This document shows positions 46,179 to 59,600 of a DNA stretch of 64,000 bases, piece after piece. The position numbers and the translations under genes are program-made. Numbering within the stretch: the first letter of the stretch is position 1; each line of letters opens with the position of its first letter. The stretch covers positions 5,580,001-5,644,000 of the forward strand of contig OZ038379.1 of NCBI GenBank assembly GCA_964036045.1, read 5' to 3'. The notes under the pieces were generated by a model, which was not told where the DNA came from, searched no databases, and saw only the letters and a list, made by a program, of their open reading frames with translations. The DNA is from Eutreptiella sp. 'Long Island Sound 2002'. Lineage: Eukaryota > Protista > Euglenida.

Positions 46179-48578
46179 ATGCTTTCGGATGCGGTCGTCA
46201 TCTGTTCACCGCAAATGATGGCCCGCGTCGGGAAGCAGCCACAGACCCGAAATCAGGGCAGAGGAGTCCTGGTCGCGTATCTTGTAGTGGCGGTTGTACT
46301 TGCCTTGCTGGCCGCCCCTCACCGCCCTTCTGCCCCGTCATTCCTGGCTGGCTCACCCGCGCTGAGCCGGGGCCCACGGGTGCAGCCCATCGCTCTGAGG
46401 GATGCTGCTCCAGTCCTGCGGGGTCGCGTGCGCAGGGTTCCGAGCGGTGCGCCCTTTGTGACGACCTCTGGCCACGCGGGACAGTCTGAGGCCGCGGCCT
46501 CCATGACGATGGCCCATGGTGCGGCTGCCTCAGGCTTTGCGCCGGTGTTGTTCAGTCTCAGTGTTGGTGCTGCAGCCGCTGCGGTCGTCGTCAGCCTCTG
46601 TTCGCTCTGGACGGGCTTCAGACCCAGGATCAGCCTTGCGGCGACCAGCGGTGAGAAGCAGGCGGAGGACGAAGACTTGGAGGGGGGTGCCCGGCCGCAT
46701 CGGAGCGGTGATCGGGGGTCAGGGCTGACGGGGCAGCAGATGCCATCGGCTGATGAGGGATCAGGCCAGGCAGGGGAGGATGGGCAGGACAGTGCTGAGG
46801 AGGACTTGCAGGACGCAGGCGTGCTGTCGCCTGATGAGTATTCCGAAATATTTGACGAGGAGTCGGAGGTGTCTGATGGGGATTCCGATGAACTCGATGA
46901 GGAGGTGGACATGTCGTACGAGGGTTCGGACGAGTATGAGGAGGAGCCAGAGGCGTACGACGAGGAATTCGAGGAGGAGTCGGACGTGTTCGACGGGGAT
47001 TCGGATGCGTTTGAGGAGGGGCCGGACCCGTTCGACGAGGGCGCAGACATTTTTGACGAGGGGTCGGACGTGGTCGATTCGGATGCGGAGGACGCCGAGG
47101 AGGCAGAGGCGCTGCCTTTCCCATGCGCCCTGTGCAGCAGCGGGTACCGTCGTGAGGAGAACCTGCTGAGGCACATGGCCTACAAGCACGGCATCCCCCC
47201 GGAGCGGTACACCCCCTTCATGCGGCTGCGCGCCGCCAGCGCCGACGCGCCCGAACCGTTCGAGCAGTCGGCCGGGTACGAGACGCAGCTGCAGAAGGTG
47301 GGCCGGGGCGTGTCCTGGGAGATGGAGCGGCTGCGGCCGCACCCGCAGCAGATCAAGAAGTGGCTGCGGCTGTACGAGCAGCTGTACTGGATCGTGACGC
47401 AGGCCCTGCCGGACGCCAAGCTGTTCGTGTTCGGCTCCGTGGCGCAGGGGACGTGCACCGTCGACAGCGACATCGACTTCTGCGTGCTCTCCGGCCCCGA
47501 CCACGAGCGGCTCATGCGGCGGACCAAGTTCCGGGACGACACCATCTTCGCGATCCGGCGCGTCCTGGCGCGCCGCGGCATGGGCAACACCCTCGTCACG
47601 CGCAGCCGGTGGCGCGCGATCCTGAAGTTCCGGGGCAGCCGGGCCGTCGAGCCCTTCGACGTGGGGCTGGAGTTCGTGCCGGTGCGGAACTCCGCGTTCA
47701 TCCGGCGGTACGTCGCGCAGCACCGGCCGCTGCTGCAGCCGCTGCTGCGGGTCGTGAACCGGTGGTCGAAGTCCGCCGGCATCAACGGCGCCGACCGCGG
47801 CTGGCTCAACACGTACGCGTTCACGCTCATGGCGCTGCACTACGCGCTCGCGGCGGGCGCGATCCAGCACCAGTCGCCGGACACCCTCCCGCACGAGTAC
47901 CTAGAGTACAACCCCCTGCCCCGGCCCCGGGAGGCCCGCGACCCGGACTTCGCGCTCGTCGCGCGCACCCTCATTGGCTTTTTCGATTACTACGGCTACG
48001 AGTTCGATGCCGCGCGGCACGTGGTGCACCTGCGCCCTCCTGGCGACCCGGTGACGAAGGCGTCCAAGGGCTGGACGCACGCCGTGTTCACCATCGAGGA
48101 CCCGATGGAGCCGGACTCCAACGCGGGCCGCCTGCTGTCGGAGAAGCGATGGCTCTGGACACAGGCGCACTGCCGCGTTGCTTCGCACCTGCTGAGGAAG
48201 GACTACACCTCCTTCTTTTCGGGCTTGGCCGAGCCCGCCGCCCCTCCGCCCCGGAGAGGGGAGCCGCACGGCCCCGGGCCGCGGCGCGCGCGCGGCCGGG
48301 GCCCCACACGCTCGCCCACCCGCTCCGGGAGTCCGGGGCGCCGCGTTCCCGGCGGCGTGCGCGATGCGCTGCGCGGACGGAGCCGCTGGAGGGCGGAGGG
48401 CACCTTCGGAAGCCGCGCCCCGCCGGACGACGGCGACCCACCCCGCCGGAGGGTGGACAGTAAGGGAAAGGGAAAGGGGGAGGGGAAGGGGAAGGGGAAG
48501 GGGAAGGGGAAGGGTGGACCGAAGAGGAAAAGACGACTTCGGGGGAGAAGGCGCGGCGGCGACGAAGATGAATGGTGA
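46179..48578 (+). CDS. Intronless terminal nucleotidyltransferase (TUTase / non-canonical poly(A) polymerase, Cid1/Trf4 fold) with C2H2 finger and predicted euglenophyte class I plastid presequence
   Basis: FGSVAQGTCTVDSDIDF (GS + DxD), third Asp in FDV, VRNS, LNTY, and PAP-associated FFDYYGYEFD...IEDPMEPDSNAGR. C-x2-C-x12-H-x4-H at ~47124-47189. TM1 ~46266-46316, TM2 ~46536-46610, then ISLAATSGEK. Start may be 46179 or 46215; AG acceptor at 46160-46161. Confidence 0.9.
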   Translation: MLSDAVVICSPQMMARVGKQPQTRNQGRGVLVAYLVVAVVLALLAAPHRPSAPSFLAGSPALSRGPRVQPIALRDAAPVLRGRVRRVPSGAPFVTTSGHAGQSEAAASMTMAHGAAASGFAPVLFSLSVGAAAAAVVVSLCSLWTGFRPRISLAATSGEKQAEDEDLEGGARPHRSGDRGSGLTGQQMPSADEGSGQAGEDGQDSAEEDLQDAGVLSPDEYSEIFDEESEVSDGDSDELDEEVDMSYEGSDEYEEEPEAYDEEFEEESDVFDGDSDAFEEGPDPFDEGADIFDEGSDVVDSDAEDAEEAEALPFPCALCSSGYRREENLLRHMAYKHGIPPERYTPFMRLRAASADAPEPFEQSAGYETQLQKVGRGVSWEMERLRPHPQQIKKWLRLYEQLYWIVTQALPDAKLFVFGSVAQGTCTVDSDIDFCVLSGPDHERLMRRTKFRDDTIFAIRRVLARRGMGNTLVTRSRWRAILKFRGSRAVEPFDVGLEFVPVRNSAFIRRYVAQHRPLLQPLLRVVNRWSKSAGINGADRGWLNTYAFTLMALHYALAAGAIQHQSPDTLPHEYLEYNPLPRPREARDPDFALVARTLIGFFDYYGYEFDAARHVVHLRPPGDPVTKASKGWTHAVFTIEDPMEPDSNAGRLLSEKRWLWTQAHCRVASHLLRKDYTSFFSGLAEPAAPPPRRGEPHGPGPRRARGRGPTRSPTRSGSPGRRVPGGVRDALRGRSRWRAEGTFGSRAPPDDGDPPRRRVDSKGKGKGEGKGKGKGKGKGGPKRKRRLRGRRRGGDEDEW

Positions 48579-50039
48579 TAGTGTGAAGATGGGCGGGATG
48601 GGTGGGGGGGGTGGGGTGCACAGGGATGCACTTGGAAAGGGGACGGGGGGTAAAGGGGGGTTTAAATGAGTGGTTGCCAACGTGGGTACCGGCGGTTGGA
48701 AAGCCGTTGGGAGGCCATTTCTGGCGGGTAACAACCGGTTGGAGGACGGTTCGGGGAGGCCTCCAGTGGATCTGTCCGAAGAGCAGCCGTGTGACTCAGG
48801 CTGCTGCAATCCCCCCCCCCCCCCCCCCTCGCGGTCGGTTGTTGGGGGCTTGCGCAGGGTCGCGCACCGAACGCCGACACAAGACCCGCTCCAGTCAGCC
48901 ATGGGCATCGCAGAGGAGATGTAGGAGGGGGGGCAAAGCACAGGACACGCCTTACTGGCCACGGACCCCAATCTTGAGACGGGGTTCTGTGAGTGGCGCG
49001 GTACCGGCACCGCTACGCCAGGGCGACAGACTGTGATTGTCTGACTACCTGTAGTCAGGCATGGTGTTCTGTTTTCTGTTTCAGACACAGTGTGTGTCCT
49101 GAGGTGTAACCAGGTTTGGCGTAGAGAAAAAAGATGCACTCATGCCTTACTGTGGAGTGCATTGCCTCTGGTTTGCATTTGTCTGTTTTTTAATTCGGTC
49201 CCCCCCCCCCCCCACAACCTTGTGAACCCCCCCCCCCCCCCCCAACCGATGCCAGGCACTACTGGCCATGGAACGCCCAGAGTTCCGCTTGAGGAGGGGC
49301 TGATTCTTCACAACAAAAGTGCAATGGCACTGCCGGAAACTAGTGAACTGCCCGTCACCAACGCCTCGCGCTCCGTACACTCCCACCTCATCCCATTGGG
49401 GCCGCGTTCCATGTTTTATTGCTGGCTGTGGGGGGCTTGGGGTGGGGTGGGGTGGGGGGGTGCCTCACAGGCAGTCGCCACAATACTACCCCCCCCCTTT
49501 CCTGTGTGTTTGGATGTGAATTGGGCTTTGCACTGGTTTTTTCTGTCACACTGGCTTTTCTTTGGAAAGCGGTCGTCACTGCCCCCCACATGTGTATCCT
49601 CCGGATCGTCAACATTTCCAATTTCCAATGCTATGAAATTGTGTCCCATTCCACCCTCATTCACAAAACTGCATTCCCCCCCCCCCAGGGCTCCTTTTAA
49701 CAACTCGGCACCGCTGGGGGGGGGGGGGGGCATACCACCCACCCACCCCCTTAAAAGATGGGGCCCAATTTTCTTCTGGGCCTTCGGTCAATCAAAATCT
49801 TTCTCTGGCGCCTCCAGCACCAATTAGTTGAGACCAAAAATTTTCTTCGGCGCCTTTGGCGCCTCTGAAAACTCAGTACCACTGGGGGGGGGGGCTCCTT
49901 TTAAGGGTTGGGATGGAGGGGTGAAGGGGGTCCACACAGGGGTCCCCCCCTGCGCAGCACAACTCGACCTTGCGCCGTGTTTGCACTTGACCCTGTGCCC
50001 GCCAGACAATGCATGATAATCTGTCGCCACTTAGCAATG

Positions 50040-56255: not shown

Positions 56256-56607
56256 ACGTGTCACAAGCCAAATGTAGCCGCAGCAGCAGCACAAGTAGTA
56301 GTAGTAAAAAGGGTTCAGACTTGTACAATCCGGACACCTACGGGTTCACCCTCACGGGGCCATAGGTAATGGCAGGCATGTTGGTTGTGTACTTTGGGTT
56401 TTGTGTTGTGCCATAAATGCAACAAAACAATGTCACAATAATAGAGAGCGAAGACGAATATCGCACAAATGCAAAAAGTTCTTAATCTAGCTGTAAAATC
56501 TCTTCATTCTTCATTCTTGATTGATCAATTTCTTGATACTTTTGACGTGGCATGTGCAATTGATTACTGTGTTGTATTGTATACGTGTGTCATTTTCTCA
56601 GTGTCCC

Positions 56608-59600
56608 ATGGCCAGCACCACCCACATCAATGCCAATGCGAGCTATGGTCCACAGGACTCCCACGTACAGCCCCCGGTGCAAAGGATGGCACATTCATTC
56701 CCGTGGCAGTCCGCACGGCCCATTTCCGCTGCTGCGCCCTTCCCACCATCCGCAAGGCGTTGGTGGTTTGTGAGTTCGTTGTTGCCAACGAGGCCACTCC
56801 TGGCGACATCCGTGCCACCCTTCACTTCCCCCTACCCTCTGATGCAGTTGTCTCAGGGTGCCGCTTTGAGGTTGGCAAGGCGCTGGTTCCTGCCGTGACC
56901 GTCAGCAAGAAGAGGGCTGCCGCCGTAGCATACGTGGAGGAGGAGCCGGGCCGTCACGTTGGGAGCACGAGTGCCGTGCAGGGCAACATGTGGCAGATGG
57001 ACATCTTCCCACTGCCTCGTGGGCGGCCCCGGCGGCTCAAGGTCAGTTTCACGTGCCCACTCCGCGAAGCGTCAGCGGGGCTGGAGCTGCGTATCCCGAT
57101 GTCATTTGAGACCCCCTTGAGGAAGGTGACGGTGCAGACGCACACCCAGCCCCAGGGCGTTCAAGTCAGTGACAGTTTGGGCGGCCGTGTGACGAACACT
57201 TTGTTGTCAGAGGGCGTCTGCATCACAATGGCCGACAGCCGCAGTCGTGAGCCAAGCGTCCTCTCATGTCTGTACCTCGACCGCCTCCACTTCGCTGTGT
57301 TTATTCCGGACGACGCCCTCGCAGTGATGGCGGCAGGGCAGGCGGGCCCGGTCAGCGCCAAGCCGCAGGGCAGCGTCCTGGTGGGGCTTGTGTGGGACGT
57401 CTCGCGCAGCTGTGCGGGCCTGTGCGGCCCCCAGACGAAGGCGTTCTTGCAGGCGCTAGCGCGGCACTACCAGACCCAGGGCACGGCTGTGGCGTTCCGG
57501 CTGACCACGTTCAGCACGACGGCCGCGCGGCGGCTGGAGCAGGGCACGCTGGCCGACCTCCTTGAGGCGCTGAAGGGCCTGGAGTACGAGGAGGGCACCG
57601 ACCTCACCGTTCTGGAGAAGGCGCTGGCGGACCGGGCCGTGACCTACTCCCTGCTGTTCACGGACCGCGTTGACAACCAGTCGGGCCAGCGCTCCCCGCA
57701 CTTCGCCCCCGACTCCCCGCCCACCCACGTGGCCATTCCCCCCGCGGAGTCCTGTGGGGTCGCCGGGGTGAACGCCCAGTTCCTCCGGCGCGTGGCCTAT
57801 CAGACGGGCGGGACGGCCATGGCCCCCGACGGGGCCTTTGCGGCGGTCCTGGCGGGCGTGCGGCCCCGCCGAGTCCTGAGGCAGGTCGAGTGCCTGGACC
57901 TCCGACGCGACCCGGAGCTGCTGCTCGACGAGGACCTGGAGACGGTGCCGAACTGCAAACTGTCGGCAAATGCGTGGCCGGTGGCGGCGGAGGGCGTCCC
58001 GCAGGGGGTCACTGACTTCCAGGTCCGCTTCACGCACGGCCGCCAGGACGGGGCCGTGGCCATCCGCGTGCCGCCGTCCCTGCCCCTGGCCCCTGAATTC
58101 GCGCAGCTGGTGGGGGTACAGCATTGCCTGCAGTTGGCGGAGCACGTGGTACTGGCCGTGGCCAACAGTGAGAGCGCGAAGGCCTGAGTGCGGGAGCGCG
58201 CCCTGCGGTACCAGTTGGCAGGGGAGCATACGTCGCTGCACAGTGCGGAGCAGTTCCGGGACAACGACCTGGACTGCCCTGCGCAGCACCCGGCCCACGC
58301 CGCGTGGCTGGCGCTGAAGGCCCAGCAGGACCGGGACCGTGCACAGCAGGCCGAAGAGGATGCGGCAGGGCTGGCGCGGAGGCTGGCGCAGGTCCAGCAG
58401 CTTGGGGGCGAGTATGTGAGGCTGTGTGCTTGGCGCCCGCCCCGCGTGTGCAGAGGCAAGGCGAAAGGGCCCGTACAATCGGGAGGTGATCGTGAAAGTG
58501 AAAGTGGAAGGGGAAGTGAAGGCTATGCCCCGAGAAGGGCACTGTGCCTCGAGAGAAGCCGTGCTCCGAGAAGGGGCATGGGCACGGCGTCGAGAACGGC
58601 GACAGGGCGCCGCTCCCCGCGTCCCAAGGGGGTGGCGATGCGCATTGCCTCGAGAAGGGCATTGGAAGGGGATGTAGATGAAGGCCCTGCTCCGAGAAGG
58701 GCAAGGAAGTGTCGCCGTCTCTGCCCTGGCTCCGCCACTCCACTGGAGCGGGCCTTCGACCGCCCTGGCTCCGCCGCTCCAGTGGAGTGGGCCTCCGACC
58801 CCTTCTCCGACTCCGACTTCGAGAGCCGTGGGGCAGCACCGCAGTCGATGGGATCGGAGGGACCCACGGCAGAAGGGGACATGGATGGTGTGCGGCTCAG
58901 CCATGCGCAATCCCGCCGCCCGGCACAGGCATTGGCACGGAAGGCATCCGTGAGGTCCCAGGACATGGATAAGGACGTCGCCCGCATCCGCGCTGCTTTG
59001 ACTGGCCCTGCTCCTCCATGTGGGACTTGCCAGGCGTTGATGAAGGTCCAACATGGCGATATTCCTGAATACCATGGGGCTCAACAATGTGACAAATGTG
59101 AGAGGAGCGATATTGCGTCAGACCCGCAGACCTGGCATTGTCGTGCATGCAAATATGACTTGTGCACCAAGTGTGCCACGACCCAAGAGGGGATCGACAA
59201 GGCCATGCGGGTGTACAAGAACGTGCGCGCCGCGCACATCGCCACGCCCTCGTTCTACTTCTACATCGCAGAGGCGCTGCGCAACGGCGGCGCCCCCAGC
59301 GCCGTGTGCACCCCGATCGCCCTGAACGTCCTGGAGATGTGCCTGCCGTCGGCGCAGAGCTGCCGGGCCGTGGCATATTTCCTGGTGTCCGTGGGGGAGT
59401 GGGAGACCGCCCTGCAGCTGCTGCACGAGGTCAAGGAGCCGGCCCCAGAGGAGCCCCAGAGCTTCAGTGACATCGCCCTTGTGACCCTCCTAATGGCGCG
59501 GCAGCAGCGCCACGAGTGGGACCGTGAGGAGCTTCGCGACCGGCTGCGGGCTGTGGTGGACAACTTGGTGGCGGTATGCAAGGGCACGTGGCCGCGTCGG

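Follow-up and report, generated by a model that had tools for sequence, protein, structure and literature searches.

Do the plastids of euglenophytes import an enzyme of the host lineage that adds untemplated nucleotides to the 3′ ends of plastid RNAs? We address this question for one gene of Eutreptiella sp. 'Long Island Sound 2002', located in a stretch of 64,000 nucleotides (nt) of contig OZ038379.1 (assembly GCA_964036045.1) that is referred to here as the window. All nt positions are those of the window, and residues (aa) are counted from Met1 of the predicted product, protein P0001. The gene had been described from the DNA letters alone (the sequence-only reading), and its frame of 799 codons without a stop, as well as every motif listed at that time, is present (Table 1). 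P0001 joins a predicted nucleotidyltransferase core to an N-terminus that resembles the import signals of euglenid chloroplast proteins. The most likely reading, to which we assign a probability of about 0.5, is that P0001 is a plastid-targeted terminal nucleotidyltransferase tailing the 3′ ends of plastid RNAs.

A nucleotidyltransferase with an intact predicted active site

Judged by sequence and structure model, P0001 is a nucleotidyltransferase of the Cid1/terminal uridylyltransferase (TUTase)/noncanonical poly(A) polymerase (ncPAP) family with an intact predicted catalytic site. Three Pfam families scored above their cut-offs: NTP_transf_2 (PF01909, 35.9 bits, cut-off 21), MTPAP-like_central (PF22600, 35.7 bits, cut-off 27) and PAP_assoc (PF03828, 47.9 bits, cut-off 22.6). 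Sequence matches in the PDB were led by TbTUT4 (7e-19), followed by RET1 (2e-18) and Cid1 (3e-17), and also comprised URT1 and RET2. An AlphaFold2 model of aa 305-705, calculated from 30 homologues, reached a mean predicted local distance difference test score (pLDDT) of 91.4 and a predicted template modelling score (pTM) of 0.90. With this model, Foldseek returned RET1 first by E-value, gave the best superposition for TbTUT4 (target-normalised template modelling (TM) score 0.78-0.80, root-mean-square deviation 3.0-3.7) and assigned a probability of 1.00 to RET1, TUT4, Cid1, CutA, GLD-2 and URT1.

In the 30-sequence homologue alignment, G419, S420, D431, D433, D494, N504 and Y546 were invariant. 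Alignment with RET1, together with the RET1 paper, equates D431, D433, D494, N504 and Y546 with RET1 D310, D312, D473, N483 and Y524. According to that paper, D310, D312 and D473 form the metal triad, while Asn483 contacts the base and Tyr524 stacks. In the nucleotide recognition motif, D641 and E644 of P0001 match RET1 D654 and E657. Since the triad and the base-contact residues are all kept, the active site of P0001 looks complete. The earlier claim of an intact catalytic triad was thus borne out at D431, D433 and D494, and Pfam, alignment and structure model agree with it. The zinc finger matched Pfam zf-C2H2 over the whole profile at a score below the gathering threshold (E 0.005, 17.8 bits), and AlphaFold2 gives it a beta-beta-alpha shape.

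The UTP-selecting histidine of Cid1 (H336) aligns with Ser647 of P0001. The sequence-only reading had warned that a preference for U or A could not be read from the sequence, and this caution is correct. From the base-contact residues, UTP is the more likely substrate, with ATP as a possible alternative.

A putative presequence of the euglenophyte class I type

The host is a marine photosynthetic euglenid, so that the presequence model developed for euglenophytes can be applied to P0001. In plastid precursors of Euglena gracilis, the hydrophobic peak of the signal peptide lies in residues 9-60, and class I precursors have a stop-transfer peak in residues 97-130. Between these peaks lies a region with a net positive charge, many Ser/Thr/Ala/Pro and few acidic residues. 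The usual distance between the two hydrophobic segments is 60 +/- 8 residues in euglenophyte presequences, and 47% of the well-supported E. gracilis plastid proteins are marked by this double-segment layout.

Counted from Met13, the hydrophobic cores of P0001 lie at aa 17-34 and 108-132 (29-46 and 120-144 from Met1). Core 1, with a Kyte-Doolittle peak of 2.6-3.0, falls inside the published 9-60 range. The spacer (aa 48-119, 72 residues) consists of 17% S+T, 21% Ala, 11% Pro, 11% R+K and 3% D+E; it carries 8 basic versus 2 acidic residues and gives no sign of a folded ectodomain. The class I plastid presequence layout proposed by the sequence-only reading thus fits published euglenophyte class I presequences in the position of core 1 and in spacer composition; for core 2, the fit depends on the cleavage site (see below).

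Such a pattern is rare by chance. It appeared in 0 of 40,000 second-order Markov sequences modelled on the region itself and in 4 of 40,000 modelled on its flanks. Among the 125 Met-started open stretches in the six frames of the window, one other match was found, a Trp/Leu low-complexity repeat. Two N-terminal hydrophobic segments were present in only one of the ~190 retrieved homologues, P0001 itself; a few distant homologues have a single N-terminal hydrophobic anchor.

If P0001 serves the plastid, one paralogue of the euglenid zinc-finger TUTases, specific to this lineage, would have acquired a plastid presequence of class I, and its product would be imported into the Eutreptiella plastid. 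Translation would begin at Met1 or Met13. The first hydrophobic segment would lead the chain into the endoplasmic reticulum (ER) and the second would halt its transfer, so that the enzyme would travel on the cytosolic side of transport vesicles. Passage via the Golgi would be followed by import and removal of the presequence of ~150 residues. The mature enzyme of ~640 residues would comprise an acidic disordered region, the C2H2 finger, the catalytic and PAP-associated domains and the basic RG/KG tail, and would add untemplated nucleotides to plastid RNA 3′ ends.

A euglenid clade apart from RET1

We calculated a family tree from 77 core domains, with branch support from the Shimodaira-Hasegawa-like approximate likelihood ratio test (SH-aLRT). 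P0001 fell into a clade of five rows (96% SH-aLRT), together with EG_transcript_10831 of E. gracilis (P0002), A0A7S4GKT1 of Eutreptiella gymnastica (P0152) and two metagenomic proteins. The trypanosomatid RET1 rows (P0022, P0028) formed a separate group, and Cid1/URT1/TUT7-type proteins split off with 100% support. The end branch of P0001 is long (0.94). In a profile-free HMMER scan of 1.84 billion representatives, only six proteins reached E <=1e-30, one of them P0001 itself.

The sequence-only reading had assigned P0001 the layout of RET1. The C2H2 finger adjoining the catalytic domain is indeed there; the RET1-type insert resembling an RNA recognition motif (RRM) is absent. D433 and D494 are 60 residues apart in P0001 versus ~160 residues for D312 to D473 in RET1, and the alignment of P0001 to RET1 was broken into two pieces, whereas that to TUT4 was continuous. 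With no inserted RRM-like domain and a position outside the RET1 clade, P0001 is not a RET1 orthologue. It should better be labelled a member of a euglenid zinc-finger TUTase clade with a TUT4-like core. A further claim failed: IEDPxE had been taken for a trypanosome alternative to the Cid1 histidine. The string is IEDPFE in Cid1 and IEDPFD in human TUT7; since Cid1 carries the motif, it is not a trypanosome-specific signature.

TbTUT4 (PDB 2ikf), a minimal cytosolic TUTase, has the same collinear core without an inserted domain, but it lacks the zinc finger, the targeting sequence and the long tails, and its identity to P0001 is ~25%. RET1 (PDB 5hzd), the mitochondrial guide-RNA and mRNA uridylyltransferase of Trypanosoma brucei, has the triad, the Asn, the stacking Tyr and the D..E pair as in P0001, and a C2H2 finger right before the catalytic domain (a RET1 feature according to PMC5159558). 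It is also an organellar enzyme of host-lineage origin, as we read P0001 to be. RET1 differs in its RRM-like middle domain, which separates the second catalytic Asp from the third and is absent from P0001, and in RET1-specific extensions, and its destination is the mitochondrion rather than the plastid. The cytosolic uridylyltransferases Cid1, TUT7 and URT1 have the two-domain fold in common with P0001, Cid1 with the exact IEDPxE and TUT7 with a close variant. They form a separate clade, however, and have the UTP-selecting His in place of Ser647.

Sister proteins start without a presequence

EG_transcript_10831 and A0A7S4GKT1 are 38-40% identical to P0001. In both, a C2H2 finger immediately precedes the catalytic domain, the core is compact and has no inserted domain, and the motif reads IEDPx(E/D). 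Unlike P0001, they possess three fingers and start at the first of them, and they have no hydrophobic N-terminus, acidic linker or RG/KG tail. The presequence and the acidic linker of P0001 occupy the place of the two further fingers; if P0001 was retargeted, these two fingers were replaced. As the sisters lack an N-terminus of this kind, it is reasonable to read P0001 as a single retargeted paralogue, and the earlier proposal of a retargeted host paralogue finds support in this sense.

Three paralogous TUTase-like genes were found in ENA assembly ERZ25074135, which includes the contig of the window. One of them consists of two exons with a GT-AG intron, and its product matches UniRef A0A7S4GKT1 of E. 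gymnastica at 100% identity across 537 residues. The genome is hence that of E. gymnastica or of an almost identical strain. The intron of the A0A7S4GKT1 gene measures 3.4 kb, whereas the P0001 gene has none. The genomic exon of A0A7S4GKT1 (L009:5896-6624) continues in frame upstream into a third C2H2 finger after Met-Met, with a stop beyond. The annotated start of UniRef A0A7S4GKT1 hence seems too late, and the extended form has three fingers like the E. gracilis sister. EG_transcript_10831 is listed in neither of the E. gracilis organelle proteome tables.

Points against import and alternative explanations

Several findings weigh against a plastid enzyme. The hydrophobic cores are separated by 73 residues instead of 60 +/- 8, and the spacing comes inside this range only if cleavage occurs ~5 or more residues past core 1. 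Codon bias in the presequence is weak, with a G+C content at third codon positions (GC3) of 0.60-0.70; the linker reaches 0.63-0.83 and the core 0.93-1.00. An acidic stretch combined with a basic tail resembling a nuclear localisation signal (NLS) is typical of nuclear and nucleolar proteins too. RNA-labelled runs of the species contained none of the sampled gene words, and a search limited to RNA-Seq libraries listed no run. No identical or near-identical copy of P0001 was found in protein collections, whether the query was the full length, the core scored within the full length or the core alone; this word-indexed search also missed relatives at 40% identity, and therefore excludes near-identical copies only. 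E. gracilis and E. longa data yielded no orthologue, the best match being 40% identical. Finally, a literature search found no paper tying poly(U) tails to euglenophyte plastids, and we know of no report of U-tails on plastid RNAs in euglenophytes.

If the N-terminal stretch is not translated, a downstream start such as Met188 would produce a nuclear, nucleolar or cytosolic TUTase or ncPAP, and the presequence stretch would be a 5′ untranslated region or what is left of a captured exon. We regard this as unlikely, although it is the rival that survives best. The codon score of aa 1-160 is +0.12 per codon versus +0.51 in the core, in line with the low GC3. Other frames of the same GC-rich stretch are likewise open for >200 codons, and in 2-7% of random sequences composition alone suffices for the frame to stay open. 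The NLS-like PKRKRRLRGRRRG in the tail and the sister proteins without presequence also fit a downstream start. On the other side, a pattern of two segments around a basic spacer with few acidic residues arose in <=4/40,000 random sequences, and the presequence stands in frame with the conserved enzyme, at the right distance before it. The frame is still open upstream as far as 45957 with a negative codon score, and the score turns from negative to positive exactly at 46179. Moreover, the codon score of the presequence ranks among the top 4% of all segments of the window and the top 9% of the GC-rich ones.

Low GC3 in poorly conserved regions is also usual for this genome. Conserved folded domains have GC3 near 0.9-1.0, and N-terminal or low-complexity parts of the same frames 0.6-0.8, for example at window:31177-33942 and 56445-58184 and in the paralogue loci L003 and L004. 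Because the same drop occurs in paralogues and in other window genes, it does not show that the presequence is non-coding or foreign, and it is not decisive. For the same reason we did not accept the GC3 jump at the zinc finger as evidence for a chimeric origin of the gene. As a separate observation, a general drop of GC3 in poorly conserved parts could mislead codon-based exon calls in this genome.

A second explanation, which we consider improbable, takes P0001 for a lineage-specific duplicate of recent origin, silent or decaying and at present without function. The searches made found neither transcript nor orthologue. The four runs that contained the locus (X1-X4) covered the gene and its flanks at an even depth of 13-30x, with spikes at repeats; this flat depth identifies them as DNA, and they are probably the assembly's own reads. 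The transcript-derived paralogue A0A7S4GKT1 is present in the same protein collection in which no copy of P0001 was found, the 90% cluster of P0001 has one member, the genome's own protein, and a metagenome scan with P0001 returned no relative. With no orthologue above 40% identity in E. gracilis or E. longa data, P0001 is not a conserved euglenophyte plastid factor, and its gene appears to be specific to Eutreptiella. The long end branch (0.94), the repeat-derived (KG)n in the tail and the minisatellite and poly-C repeats flanking the gene fit a silent duplicate as well. Yet the frame of 799 codons is intact, all invariant catalytic and fold positions are retained, the structure prediction is confident, and the extreme codon bias of the core (GC3 0.93-1.00) is unexpected for a decaying gene.

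Weakest, and in our view quite improbable, is a translated N-terminus that makes P0001 a type I membrane protein of the ER, Golgi or endomembranes, with a cytosol-facing TUTase tailing cytosolic or membrane-associated RNAs: a signal peptide plus stop-transfer segment predicts exactly this topology in transit, and the R-P-R after the second segment, a spacing slightly above 60 +/- 8 and the singly anchored distant homologues suit it, but the 73-residue lumenal part has the composition of a transit peptide without sign of a folded ectodomain, and the double-segment layout is the one that marks 47% of well-supported E. gracilis plastid proteins.

Possible consequences for plastid RNA tailing

Import of P0001 into the plastid remains our preferred reading, and E. 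gracilis provides context for it. The mitochondrial proteome of this species includes a terminal uridylyl transferase (transcript 2593). Its plastid proteome contains a "uridylyltransferase-like protein" (transcript 4157), detected in the plastid fraction only (bioRxiv 10.1101/573709, supplementary table); for Eutreptiella, our searches returned no plastid proteome. The N-terminus of transcript 4157 is verified by the spliced leader and has no signal and no presequence class; polynucleotide phosphorylase (PNPase) and PARN are listed beside it (bioRxiv 10.1101/573709). By annotation, transcript 4157 belongs to the same enzyme class as P0001 and to a euglenophyte plastid as well, but it differs in having no recognised targeting signal. 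The searches returned no E. gracilis protein above 40% identity to P0001, so that transcript 4157 is not a close orthologue, and it was not among the 30 named homologue clusters. Since transcript 4157 is already listed, the idea that euglenophyte plastids contain a TUTase-like enzyme is not new. What is new here is the predicted combination of a TUTase with a textbook class I presequence.

Poly(U) tails occur in chromerid plastids. To our knowledge, no enzyme has been named for poly(U) tailing in the plastids of dinoflagellates or chromerids. For dinoflagellate plastids such tails are described as established (Wang and Morse 2006, via a citing paper), and in E. gracilis a small share of the plastid transcripts is polyadenylated according to Zahonova 2014, as cited in PMC6242988. 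It is conceivable, though we hold it to be more doubtful than import itself, that Eutreptiella imports a host-derived, UTP-preferring transferase and that euglenophyte plastid RNAs carry untemplated 3′ U or mixed tails. If true, these tails would be a convergent parallel to the plastid poly(U) of dinoflagellates and chromerids.

Should P0001 be produced and enter the plastid, it would show clearly that a secondary plastid has recruited an RNA-tailing enzyme from the host lineage. As the gene is named, its catalytic core defined and its processing sites predicted, 3′ tailing in euglenophyte plastids would become directly testable, and comparison with the presequence-less sisters would offer a clean example of one paralogue gaining organelle targeting.

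Gene features, surroundings and further paralogues

Features of the gene are collected in Table 1.

Table 1. Features of the P0001 gene and its predicted product
Feature	Position in window (nt)	Strand	Residues (aa)	Details
Whole ORF (open reading frame), P0001	46179-48578	+		translation; 799 codons + stop, uninterrupted, no intron
Met13-Met14	46215-46220	+	13-14	alternative start; 15-residue basic n-region, then hydrophobic core
Hydrophobic core 1	46263-46316	+	29-46	read as signal-peptide h-region
Transit-peptide-like spacer	46317-46535	+	47-119	Ser/Ala/Pro/Arg-rich, 2 acidic residues, net positive
Hydrophobic core 2	46536-46610	+	120-144	read as stop-transfer anchor, followed by R-P-R
ISLAATSGEK			151-160	motif position
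Acidic low-complexity linker	46659-47117	+	161-313	~35% Asp+Glu; codon score +0.46 per codon
Single C2H2 zinc finger	47118-47189	+	314-337	C-x2-C-x12-H-x4-H; homology to sister proteins starts here
Pol-beta-type catalytic domain	47322-47678	+	382-500	G419 S420, D431, D433, D494
FGS			from 418	motif position
DSDIDF			429-434	motif position; D431, D433
PFDVG			492-496	motif position; D494
Base-contact region	47682-47816	+	502-546	VRNS (502-505, N504) to LNTY (543-546, stacking Tyr Y546)
PAP-associated domain with nucleotide recognition motif	47964-48131	+	639-651 (motif)	IEDPMEPDSNAGR; D641, E644, Ser647
Basic Arg/Gly and Lys/Gly tail	48276-48575	+	700-799	
(KG)n in tail	48462-48515	+	762-779	encoded by GGGAAG-type repeat
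NLS-like sequence in tail	48519-48557	+		PKRKRRLRGRRRG

R+K account for 34% of the last 100 residues of P0001. Positions 48454-48520, which span the (KG)n microsatellite, were skipped as a repeat in read mapping, and the copy number there rests on the assembly.

The surroundings of the gene are rich in repeats. Upstream, a 14-nt minisatellite with a consensus close to GTAGATGGGGGCGC forms two long arrays (window:43500-44880), and a dispersed repeat at window:45182-45375, ~800 nt before the start codon, reached ~40-90x the single-copy depth in the four DNA runs. Long poly-C/poly-G tracts lie just downstream (window:48808-48830, 49197-49243 and 49676-49733). Their word depth rises up to thousands of times the baseline, with many read joints, which marks them as a very abundant genome-wide repeat type. 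As no terminal inverted repeats surround the gene, and only minisatellites and poly-C/G tracts were seen, we rejected an origin as transposon cargo. A retrogene with a spliced-leader relic was likewise rejected, since no leader-like sequence lies upstream. Within the gene, an in-frame inverted repeat at 46327-46346/46720-46739 (20 nt, 85% complementary) brackets the transit-peptide and stop-transfer region. We did not accept its arms as the ends of a non-conventional intron, because a similar number of such repeats is expected by chance in 8 kb.

Two further paralogues are larger proteins. P0010 (985 aa; L004:1001-3958, ctg10247) has an N-terminal TUTase-like core and a C-terminal region resembling an Upf1-like superfamily 1 (SF1) helicase. 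This region matches Pfam AAA_11 and AAA_19, and the next called gene contains AAA_12; the locus may encode a fusion of tailing enzyme and helicase or represent one spliced gene. In P0006 (1805 aa; L003:1001-6418, ctg9708), Cys/His-rich modules are repeated several times and an R3H domain lies at the C-terminus. Its TUTase core is interrupted by a Gly/Thr/Ala low-complexity insert, and since GC3 falls to 0.62-0.78 inside it, the insert could be an in-frame intron.

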